From NCBI RefSeq assembly GCF_947568905.1, contig NC_079164.1:24738001-24802000 (forward strand): a stretch of DNA of 64,000 nt, given 5' to 3'. Under the pieces are notes generated by a model. It did no database searches. It saw only the letters and a program-made list of their open reading frames with translations, and was not told the DNA's origin. Shown here piece by piece: positions 34,309-35,798 of the stretch (within the stretch, counting starts at the first letter, position 1; each line of letters opens with the position of its first letter). Both the position numbers and the translations under genes were made by a program. Origin of the DNA: Ostrea edulis. Lineage: Eukaryota.

Positions 34309-34345
34309 GGCCCTTTTTAGGGCCACCCACATGTTACGAAAAGAT
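34309..34345 (+). terminator. Histone-type 3' stem-loop plus HDE, copy 1
   Basis: ACCAAAC-GGCCCT-TTTT-AGGGCC-ACCCA, then GAAAAGAT at 34338-34345. It lies 23 nt after the RING ORF stop, with no plus-strand AATAAA nearby. Confidence 0.88.
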
Positions 34346-34393
34346 GCTTTTATGACAATGATTGAGAAACAAATTAACACCAGTTGCACTTTA

Positions 34394-34897
34394 TTAACAA
34401 ATACATGATTTAATGACAATATACACTTGTTGATCACACCTATAAGCAAAATCATGAATACATTGTCTGTAATGAGTCCAATTTCCTCCCGCTAACCCAC
34501 ATCCAATCTTATAAGGGAAGGCTAAAGTCTTGTACGATAATGTGGCCAATTCACGTAAACATTGTTGAAACCATAGTTCTCGCTGTTCGGGTATATCTCG
34601 ATAGCGGGGAATACGCTGAGTTCCTTTTCCGTAATCCCACTGGGCTAAGAAACAAATCACATCAGGGTCTGTAGCATTTGATAAGATGCGTAACGTGCCG
34701 GGTATTCCTCGATCGGGTTCTATAGCTAGATTTCTACGGCCTAAGGGTCTCCGTGTAGCATACAAGTTGCCCCATGGATATTTGTCGGCAATACTTTGAC
34801 TTAATCCATGAGGTTTCACCGTTAAACAATTACATTGTTGTACAATACCATCGACTTTCATAGTGAGTAAATCTCCCTGCACATAAGTCACACTCAT
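34394..34897 (-). CDS. Macrodomain protein (TARG1/DarG/Poa1p-like ADP-ribose-processing module, 167 aa)
   Basis: V.GDLL, IVQQCNC, and LAFPYKIGCGLAGGNW. AATAAA overlaps the stop codon (34390-34395). Confidence 0.88.
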   Translation of the reverse strand: MSVTYVQGDLLTMKVDGIVQQCNCLTVKPHGLSQSIADKYPWGNLYATRRPLGRRNLAIEPDRGIPGTLRILSNATDPDVICFLAQWDYGKGTQRIPRYRDIPEQRELWFQQCLRELATLSYKTLAFPYKIGCGLAGGNWTHYRQCIHDFAYRCDQQVYIVIKSCIC

Positions 34898-35094
34898 GAT
34901 GTGAATGATGCGTGTCGAGGCTACAGCTTTCGTTTATATAAGTCACATTCACACGGTGTGTTTGTTGAGTGTCAATCATGGGGTTTCTTTGTCAAAGGTT
35001 CACTACCCCATTCAAAGTGGCATTAAAATAGGATGAAATAGGTTTTTCTCTATCGATCTAACTATCATTGAGGTTTCTACTACCTCACAGACGT

Positions 35095-35485
35095 GAGAAA
35101 TGAAGTTTTAAAGAGGCGGAGAAGAAACATCGAGCCTCGACTCGACCTCTTTGACCTTTGATTCTTTGAAAACTATGCGACGTAGCAAAATAAAAGTAAG
35201 TTTAACGAATTCCGCGCCCTAGAATCTATCAGATTAAATCTACCATGCACAGATATCGAATGTCTAGAAAAAGAAAATGAGAAAAAACACTCTGCTCGAA
35301 AGCACAAATCCGCCATTTTGACGACCACCATCTTGGCTTCGTCTCCGAAGCAAGGGATGTTTTCGAGGAGGTCCGCGCTTTCCTGATATATACCGGCGCG
35401 CTCGCCAGTTCGCTTCACTGGTGATCCAGCACTGATTTGAAGGATTTTTAAGATATAGAAGAAAGAAGATAGAAGAAAGAAGAAG
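35095..35485 (+). promoter_or_regulatory. Duplicated promoter and 5'UTR, copy 2
   Basis: GGTCCGC at 35370-35376, TATATA at 35387-35392, and the same purine-rich leader AGAAGAAAGAAGATAGAAGAAAGAAG as copy 1. Confidence 0.8.
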
Positions 35486-35713
35486 ATGAGCCGAGTACCG
35501 AGTCCTCCCATCAAGAACCACAACCTGGTCCCGGAGGATCAGCGTGAGGACTGGGATGCCGAGCTGGAACTGGTACAGCGGCCCCCGGGGCGCATTGTGT
35601 TCCAACCCGACGACTCATATGAGTGGCACTTCTTCTATGAAGGAGTGCCAGATGCCCCCAAGAAGCCGCTCAAGAGACGCCGCCGCCGAAACAAGAAGGC
35701 CGCCAGACAGTAA
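35486..35713 (+). CDS. Small acidic/basic protein with NLS (75 aa), function unknown
   Basis: ATG at the same position relative to the duplicated promoter as the RING gene; C-terminal PKKPLKRRRRRNKK; followed by a histone stem-loop. Confidence 0.65.
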   Translation: MSRVPSPPIKNHNLVPEDQREDWDAELELVQRPPGRIVFQPDDSYEWHFFYEGVPDAPKKPLKRRRRRNKKAARQ

Positions 35714-35761
35714 TGAGGTAATCAACCTCTAGACAGTGTGGGGGGCTTTCATAGTCCCCCC

Positions 35762-35798
35762 GGCCCTTTTCAGGGCCACCCACATCTTATGAAAAGAG
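35762..35798 (+). terminator. Histone-type 3' stem-loop plus HDE, copy 2
   Basis: GGCCCT-TTTC-AGGGCC-ACCCA (35762-35782) is the canonical consensus; GAAAAGAG follows at 35791-35798. Confidence 0.92.

Follow-up and report, generated by a model that had tools for sequence, protein, structure and literature searches.

Histone-type mRNA 3'-end signals on two non-histone genes of a Polinton in the flat-oyster genome

Results

A Polinton/Maverick element in Ostrea edulis

We investigated a 64,000-nucleotide stretch of the Ostrea edulis genome (assembly GCF_947568905.1, contig NC_079164.1, positions 24,738,001 to 24,802,000 of the forward strand), hereafter the window. Coordinates below are those of the window. 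We found a 21.1-kb Polinton/Maverick element with 362-nt terminal inverted repeats whose arms are 98% complementary, and with a 6-bp target-site duplication (TTGGTA) on both sides. The element and its hallmark genes are as follows.

29256-50362, Polinton/Maverick element (21,107 bp), flanked by TTGGTA at 29250-29255 and 50363-50368
29256-29616, left terminal inverted repeat
50002-50362, right terminal inverted repeat
36353-36856 (-), adenovirus-type cysteine protease (sub-threshold match; Pfam Peptidase_C5, E 0.0018)
36856-38259 (-), major capsid protein, predicted double jelly-roll
41428-42519 (-), retroviral-type integrase with a chromodomain (Pfam rve, E 1.2e-9, and Chromo)
44617-45270 (-), A32-like genome-packaging ATPase (Pfam Pox_A32)
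45869-49843 (-), protein-primed family B DNA polymerase (Pfam DNA_pol_B_2, E 1.5e-54)

The AlphaFold model of the capsid protein (pLDDT 81) matched the capsid proteins of Sputnik, PBCV-1 and mavirus in Foldseek searches at E about 1e-15. The penton protein was not identified.

Two gene cassettes ending in a histone-type stem-loop

Interestingly, two short intronless genes on the plus strand of this element are each followed by a stem-loop, an ACCCA flank and a purine-rich downstream element. The two cassettes and their surroundings are as follows.

33101-33491 (+), promoter and 5'UTR of cassette A, with a TATA-like box and conserved upstream blocks
33492-34286 (+), RING-like zinc-finger protein gene (264 aa, 64% G+C)
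34292-34304 (+), small extra hairpin (5 bp) just upstream of stem-loop 1
34304-34349 (+), histone-type 3' signal 1: stem-loop 34309-34324, ACCCA 34325-34329 with predicted cleavage just after it, GAAAAGA 34338-34344
34390-34395 (-), AATAAA of the convergent gene, overlapping that gene's stop, 66 nt after the stem of signal 1
34394-34897 (-), convergent 167-aa ORF of unknown function, with no Pfam family
35095-35485 (+), promoter and 5'UTR of cassette B, a duplicate of that of cassette A
35486-35713 (+), small protein gene (75 aa, 60% G+C) with an acidic EDWDAE-type motif and a basic tail
35740-35760 (+), extra G/C-rich hairpin abutting stem-loop 2
35757-35802 (+), histone-type 3' signal 2: stem-loop 35762-35777, ACCCA 35778-35782, GAAAAGA 35791-35797
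35854-35859 (-), AATAAA of the convergent gene, 77 nt after the stem of signal 2
35876-36208 (-), convergent 110-aa ORF of unknown function

Both motifs lie exactly where the original prediction had placed them. The stem-loops start 22 and 48 nt after the stop of their ORFs, and GAAAAGA lies 8 nt after ACCCA at both sites. The Rfam Histone3 model (RF00032) scores the two sites at 39.5 bits (E 4e-8) and 36.6 bits (E 5e-7) against a gathering score of 34. Both align over the full 46-nt model, including the A/purine-rich downstream part, and they are the only Rfam hits above threshold in the window. The 5' flank is CAAAC at site 1 but C-rich rather than A-rich at the lower-scoring site 2. A chance origin is rejected by these scores and by dinucleotide shuffling: the 21-nt pattern with up to 2 mismatches occurs twice in the window and never in 100 shuffles. 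No AATAAA or ATTAAA was found on the plus strand within 300 nt after either ORF. A scan for bacterial-type promoters and terminators, irrelevant to a eukaryotic element, gave nothing above shuffles. The extra hairpins listed above were obtained by RNA folding of 34284-34329 and 35711-35782.

Neither ORF matches a histone or any other Pfam family above threshold, and neither protein was on record in the assembly collection by exact look-up. The original prediction called the first ORF a RING protein, but this assignment is only sub-threshold: Pfam zf-RING_2 matches at E 0.038 and 14.7 bits against a cut-off of 27.3, and a profile search against PDB gave only weak matches to RING chains of TRIM32 and CNOT4 (E 0.1-0.7). 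Seven Cys and one His are invariant in the family alignment, whereas the structure prediction was too poor for a fold search (pLDDT 47). The two genes share a promoter and 5'UTR of 96% identity, blocks of which are conserved in distant relatives. They are also compositional outliers in the element, with G+C of 60-64% and GC3 of 0.61-0.72, against 39-49% and 0.27-0.57 for the other ORFs.

We also found a third Histone3-like hairpin, not noted in the original prediction, which scores below the gathering threshold.

30944-30990 (-), possible third, degenerate histone-like stem-loop (stem 30970-30985; 27.2 bits)
31059-31484 (-), 141-aa ORF upstream of this hairpin, with a weak Viral_Rep match only

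The closing pair of this hairpin is A-U, and neither ACCCA nor GAAAAGA is present. The same hairpin is present in two other O. edulis copies of the element (L008 and L009), and the 141-aa ORF is 46% identical to its L008 counterpart. We do not count this hairpin as a signal, because it is below threshold and has no downstream element.

Conservation of the signals in related elements

We then investigated relatives of the two genes. Histone3 hits follow homologous ORFs in L008 and L009, in five metagenome contigs (L001, L002, L003, L005 and L006), in Polintons of Crassostrea virginica (L010) and Saccostrea echinata (L011) found through the capsid gene, and in SRA-derived contigs (L012-L020) carrying a 190-aa RING-like protein. 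The SRA-derived contigs run 36-272 nt past the stem-loop and give no evidence of an RNA end there; their library type is unknown. Small ORFs homologous to the 75-aa gene are followed by a stem-loop in L008 and L002, and the same L008-type small ORF region and stem-loop are present in L009. On the other hand, IMG/VR viral contigs yielded no exact stem-loop match, only one looser match (L007) that Rfam did not report at E up to 0.05, and no relatives of the capsid or RING-like protein. The phenomenon is therefore not documented here outside oyster-type elements.

Synonymous sites between the window and the metagenome relatives are saturated (dS 1.3-1.9), while dN/dS is 0.24-0.52, indicating purifying selection on the ORFs. 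The 26-nt core nevertheless stays 81-100% identical to signal 1, whereas upstream identity is 32-54% and downstream identity is 46-62%, and GAAAAG starts 12-14 nt after the stem in 11 of 11 primary stem-loops. Among 21 related stem-loops, 97.6% of cells pair. Pair 1 is G-C in 14 and A-U in 6, pair 3 is C-G in 19 and U-A in 2, and no pair changes on one side only and still pairs. Thus, two stem pairs show compensatory changes, although this covariation rests on only two of six pairs and many of the sequences are related. G-C is found at pair 2 in 20 of 21 stem-loops and U-A at the top pair in 21 of 21, and loop positions 1 and 3 are invariant T.

An opposite-strand AATAAA lies 66-80 nt after the stem at 10 stem-loop sites in seven sequences (the window, L001, L008, L009, L010, L012 and L017). 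Several relatives also have a same-strand AATAAA 40-105 nt after the stem-loop, or an AATAAA or ATTAAA 40-106 nt after it (L008, L009, L002, L010 and L011), so back-up polyadenylation cannot be excluded for the family. Extra stem-loops without a downstream element occur just upstream of the main one in L001, L002, L005, L006, L011 and L012.

Discussion

A possible use of the histone mRNA pathway by Polintons

The original prediction held that the element may use the host histone 3'-processing pathway to make poly(A)-minus, cell-cycle-gated mRNAs that could escape poly(A)/PABP-dependent control. Our sequence and comparative evidence strongly supports its core, namely that genuine histone-type stem-loop and downstream-element signals are attached to non-histone genes of a Polinton and conserved across divergent relatives. 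The remainder is inferred. In the absence of transcript data, and of the host U7 snRNA and histone 3' ends for comparison, we consider it probable that a family of oyster Polintons (Maverick/adintovirus-like elements) has put at least two accessory genes, for a RING-like zinc-finger protein and a small acidic/basic protein, under the host's replication-dependent histone mRNA 3'-end pathway. In this model, RNA polymerase II transcribes each short, intronless, G+C-rich gene from a shared conserved promoter, SLBP binds the 6-bp/4-nt stem-loop, U7 snRNP pairs with the GAAAAGA-containing downstream element, and the pre-mRNA is cut just after ACCCA. The result would be a non-polyadenylated mRNA whose export, translation and decay depend on SLBP. 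Expression would then be coupled to S phase, and possibly to oocytes and cleavage-stage embryos, where histone mRNA and SLBP are abundant. A second benefit does not exclude the first: the whole signal fits in about 45 nt and sits back-to-back with the poly(A) signal of a convergent gene, giving a very compact two-way 3'-end module in a crowded genome.

Alternatively, the signals might be kept mainly because U7-type cleavage gives tight termination between convergent genes, while mature mRNAs are often, or mainly, polyadenylated at downstream sites without special cell-cycle gating. The conserved opposite-strand AATAAA and the same-strand signals of several relatives fit this reading, and a paper on bivalve histone genes cites mussel histone H1 'orphon' genes as carrying a polyadenylation signal (PMC6210712). 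However, the window element has no such plus-strand signal within 300 nt after either gene, and the full SLBP-type sequence, not merely a hairpin, is conserved together with ACCCA and a fixed-distance purine element, which is what the processing machinery needs. We regard this alternative as unlikely, though it overlaps with the preferred model more than it excludes it. Less likely still, the stem-loops might recruit SLBP, or the 3'hExo exonuclease, for translation or stability control, or titrate SLBP, with 3' ends made in some other way. The extra stem-loops without a downstream element, including the third hairpin on the left arm, are in line with this idea. On the other hand, the fixed position of GAAAAG at every primary stem-loop is unnecessary for SLBP binding alone, and the window has no alternative 3' signal. 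That the hairpins are inert relics of captured host histone genes with chance ORFs in front of them, as their cellular type and the atypical G+C content of the two genes could hint, is largely refuted by the purifying selection on the ORFs, their conservation in other oyster genera, the survival of the signal beside saturated synonymous sites and unalignable flanks, the compensatory stem changes and the absence of a histone-fold ORF.

It is somewhat more likely than not that a lineage of animal Polintons has taken over the SLBP/U7 snRNP pathway, so that some of its mRNAs lack poly(A) tails and are expressed only when and where histone mRNAs are. These would be the first non-histone clients of this pathway, and the first case of a virus-like element using it. 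This would give a simple explanation of how an integrated DNA virus can tie some of its genes to host DNA replication or to the germline and embryo, and would offer a natural set of variant stem-loops and downstream elements to compare with host histone genes. It would also warn that poly(A)-selected RNA-seq may systematically miss such genes. These ORFs are currently annotated only as 'uncharacterized' in oyster genomes.

Comparison with known systems

The signals resemble the metazoan replication-dependent histone mRNA 3' end in having a 6-bp stem, a 4-nt U-rich loop, an ACCCA-type 3' flank and a purine-rich element at a fixed short distance, a few tens of nt after the stop of a short intronless gene. 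However, the genes encode no histone and sit inside a mobile virus-like element, and many copies carry an additional hairpin or a second stem-loop just upstream. Histone mRNAs are described as the only known cellular mRNAs with this non-polyadenylated end (PMC4604434), and the pathway is regarded as dedicated to histones. With Polinton/Maverick elements and adintoviruses, the element shares terminal inverted repeats, a 6-bp target duplication, protein-primed PolB, rve integrase, an A32-like ATPase, an adenovirus-type protease (sub-threshold match) and a predicted double jelly-roll capsid protein. The adintovirus description does not mention polyadenylation signals or stem-loops, and mentions histones only in a methyltransferase annotation (PMC8502044). 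In the literature searched, we found no paper that combines Polintons with histone stem-loops, and no description of such signals in Polintons or transposons.

Giant viruses and relatives that encode histones also link DNA viruses to the host histone system. Those viruses carry histone proteins, and a 2026 survey found no SLBP or other histone 3'-end processing components in viral genomes (bioRxiv 10.64898/2026.10.14.759114). Here it is the reverse: there is no histone protein, but the cis-acting RNA signal is present. In human endogenous retrovirus LTR12 elements, a histone-pathway RNA component interacts with sequences of an endogenous virus-like element, as U7 snRNA acts on HDE-like motifs (PMC11417402). 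There, U7 represses transcription through these motifs, with no stem-loop and no 3'-end formation, whereas in the oyster Polinton the full processing signal sits at the 3' end of coding genes.

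Identification of two histone-type 3' signals

We first searched the window for the two stem-loop motifs with ACCCA and GAAAAGA elements reported in the original prediction, and found both exactly as described:

34309-34324, stem-loop of site 1, followed by ACCCA at 34325-34329, an 8-nt spacer and GAAAAGA at 34338-34344
35762-35777, stem-loop of site 2, followed by ACCCA at 35778-35782, an 8-nt spacer and GAAAAGA at 35791-35797

A scan of the whole window against Rfam at curated thresholds returned only two matches, both to RF00032 (histone 3' UTR stem-loop) over the full 46-nt model, with scores of 39.5 and 36.6 bits against a gathering score of 34. 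The 21-nt pattern with up to two mismatches was found twice in the window and never in 100 shuffles. A more permissive scan of 21-52 kb added one sub-threshold Histone3-like hairpin at 30944-30990 on the minus strand (27.2 bits). A (GT)n run at 30990-31058 separates this third, degenerate stem-loop from a 141-aa minus-strand ORF, which is flanked by three copies of a 70-nt repeat (30755-30886 and 31549-31618; 91-93% identical to the reference copy) that may be regulatory. Interestingly, in L008, another Ostrea edulis copy of the element, the ORF is only 46% identical, yet the sequence from the hairpin onward is about 98% identical, suggesting modular recombination.

The stem-loops lie in a Polinton/Maverick element

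Both sites are located inside a 21.1-kb element, which is a Polinton/Maverick. It is bounded by 362-nt inverted repeats that are 98% complementary and is flanked on both sides by TTGGTA, a 6-bp target duplication. The element encodes a protein-primed family B polymerase, an rve integrase with a chromodomain, an A32-like packaging ATPase, an adenovirus-type protease (a sub-threshold match) and a CCHC zinc-knuckle protein. Its extent and further features are as follows:

29256-50362, the whole element
36856-38259, minus strand, a 467-aa ORF predicted to encode a double jelly-roll capsid protein
45296-45847, an inhibitor-of-apoptosis-like protein (BIR domain plus C3HC4 RING) next to the polymerase gene
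31705-32742, plus strand, three tandem paralogous small ORFs (about 100-130 aa) with repeated start regions

The model of the 467-aa ORF has a pLDDT of 81 and matches the double jelly-roll capsid proteins of Sputnik, PBCV-1 and mavirus at E about 1e-15. The hallmark ORFs that we looked at are uninterrupted. The three tandem small ORFs are followed by a canonical AATAAA near 32938, and thus appear to use ordinary polyadenylation, unlike their neighbours. Outside the Polinton, a separate element of about 5 kb (22063-27154) is bounded by 112-nt inverted repeats (96% complementary) with further nested inverted repeats. It carries minus-strand ORFs, one of which (22886-23563) matches the tyrosine recombinase family Phage_integrase at E 3e-8, and it may be a Crypton- or DIRS-like transposon. 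Host-side tandem repeats are found at 18533-20238 and 55413-56000, comprising a 17-nt unit satellite in two blocks and four copies of a unit of about 139 nt.

Two gene cassettes share a promoter and a 3' signal

We then investigated the genes that precede the stem-loops. Each stem-loop closes a short plus-strand gene in the left arm, among genes of mixed orientation:

33492-34286, plus strand, gene A (264 aa), with an N-terminal domain, a basic stretch, a long proline-rich linker and a C-terminal Cys/His cluster
35486-35713, plus strand, gene B (75 aa), with an acidic EDWDAE-type motif and a basic tail

The label 'RING' given to gene A in the original prediction is only weakly supported, and we refer to its product as RING-like. 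The 390 nt before each start codon are 96% identical, down to a purine-rich leader, and about 100 nt after each stem-loop are also related. The two genes therefore share both their promoter and their 3' signal, although their coding sequences are unrelated. The shared promoter contains, at 33262-33400 and 35256-35394, two GCCAT-containing blocks, a GTCCGCGCT block and a TATA-like box, and these blocks are conserved in relatives whose coding regions are saturated at synonymous sites. Interestingly, the two genes are compositional outliers in the element. Their G+C contents are 64% and 60% and their GC3 values are 0.61 and 0.72, whereas all other ORFs have 39-49% G+C and a GC3 of 0.27-0.57. The same holds in relatives, and could reflect codon use, origin, or mRNA stability without poly(A). 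Neither gene has AATAAA or ATTAAA on its own strand within 300 nt after the stop.

The signals are conserved in divergent relatives

The main new evidence comes from conservation. Gene A has close paralogues in O. edulis and distant homologues on short metagenome contigs (36-43% BLASTP identity; 47-54% over aligned columns). Every fetched contig that extends beyond the stop carries a Histone3 hit after the ORF. The hits in the metagenome contigs L001, L003, L005 and L006 score 35.5-36.6 bits, and that in the metagenome contig L002 scores 24 bits with one stem mismatch. L002 also repeats the two-gene layout, in that a 90-aa ORF with the same EDWDAE motif is followed 9 nt later by a second stem-loop (32.8 bits, cut by the contig end). 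Two other O. edulis copies, L008 and L009, have both stem-loops. In L009 (10001-12290; O. edulis chromosome OX387708.1), the first stem-loop has a mismatch (28.3 bits) and the zinc-finger part is not encoded in frame. The NCBI gene model P0003 joins the front of a RING-like ORF to the small ORF by a predicted intron that skips this first stem-loop.

Starting from the capsid protein instead, we obtained related Polintons from Crassostrea virginica (L010) and Saccostrea echinata (L011). Each has a Histone3 hit above threshold (35.5 and 36.2 bits), just downstream of an ORF with the same zinc-finger domain and next to the protease and capsid genes. The RING-like reading frame looks interrupted in L009 and L011, with at least one frame change each. 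A profile search found a still more distant 190-aa protein with this zinc finger on contigs assembled from many public sequencing runs. Nine of the ten fetched contigs (L012-L020) carry two tandem stem-loops starting 10 nt after the stop, followed by GAAAAGA, while the tenth (L021) gave no hit in our motif scan. On the other hand, both metagenome scans and four IMG/VR scans were blank. The only IMG/VR contig matching a relaxed stem-loop pattern (L007 3934-3952; UViG 3300037313_000809) was not reported by Rfam at E up to 0.05, and probably contains a chance hairpin. The known range is therefore oyster-type Polintons plus unidentified marine and SRA contigs.

We next examined the strength of the constraint. 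Between the window gene and the metagenome relatives, dS is 1.3-1.9 (saturated) and dN/dS is 0.24-0.52 across all pairs, and thus the ORF is a real gene under purifying selection. The 26 nt comprising the 5' flank, stem-loop and ACCCA are 81-100% identical to site 1 in all lineages, while the 60 nt upstream are 32-54% identical and the 60 nt downstream are 46-62% identical. GAAAAG begins 12-14 nt after the stem in 11 of 11 primary stem-loops. In an alignment of 21 stem-loops, 97.6% of cells form standard pairs. Although only two pairs vary and many of the sequences are related, the covariation score exceeds all 500 shuffles and all slid controls. The closing pair is G-C in 14 and A-U in 6, the third pair is C-G in 19 and U-A in 2, and no pair changes on one side only and still pairs.

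A recurrent back-to-back architecture

Each stem-loop gene converges on a neighbouring gene. An AATAAA on the opposite strand lies 66-80 nt after the stem at 10 stem-loop sites in seven sequences, namely both window sites, both sites in L008 and in L009, and one each in L001, L010, L012 and L017. In the window, these hexamers are located as follows:

34390-34395, opposite strand, AATAAA after site 1
35854-35859, opposite strand, AATAAA after site 2

The two 3' ends therefore abut within a few tens of nucleotides, forming a back-to-back module. Most copies also carry an extra hairpin immediately upstream of the main stem-loop. In the window, these are a 5-bp hairpin at 34292-34304 and a G/C-rich hairpin at 35740-35760. 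Interestingly, in L001 (1775-1790), L002, L005 (1274-1289), L006, L011 and L012 (1302-1317), the extra hairpin is itself a histone-like stem-loop without a downstream element.

Possible processing by the histone mRNA pathway

In histone pre-mRNA processing, SLBP binds the stem-loop, U7 snRNP pairs with the downstream element, and CPSF73 cleaves a few nucleotides after the stem (for example, PMC5435866 and PMC1635294). The most economical reading, inferred without transcript data, host U7 or host histone genes, is that these Polinton genes are processed in that way. Their mRNAs would then lack poly(A) and depend on SLBP, which in animals confines histone mRNA to S phase and to oocytes and early embryos. 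For an element that replicates with its own polymerase and must reach the germline, either timing would make sense, although this step is inference. A second rationale, which does not compete with the first, is the compactness of the signal and the tight termination it gives between convergent genes.

Alternatively, the signals might have a dual-signal or terminator-only role, which cannot be excluded. A same-strand AATAAA or ATTAAA occurs 40-106 nt after the stem in L008, L009, L002, L010 and L011, and a paper on bivalve histone genes cites mussel histone H1 'orphon' genes as carrying a polyadenylation signal (PMC6210712). SLBP binding without cleavage is suggested only by the extra stem-loops, and the fixed-distance downstream element argues against it. 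Inert relics of captured histone genes are contradicted by the conservation data.

Comparison with known systems

In the literature searched, which leaves out most subscription journals so that an earlier description cannot be ruled out, no paper combines histone stem-loops with Polintons. Judging by title and abstract, none of the searched papers containing both histone stem-loops and transposition-related words concerns such a signal on a mobile element. The adintovirus paper (PMC8502044) mentions neither polyadenylation nor stem-loops, and neither does a survey of endogenous dsDNA viral elements that highlights bivalves. A 2026 preprint on the evolution of the pathway (bioRxiv 10.64898/2026.10.14.759114) reports no processing components in viral genomes, and a search of its text found no occurrence of 'non-histone' or 'transpos-'. 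The nearest link between this pathway and endogenous viral elements is U7 acting on HDE-like motifs in human LTR12s (PMC11417402), which is a different mechanism.
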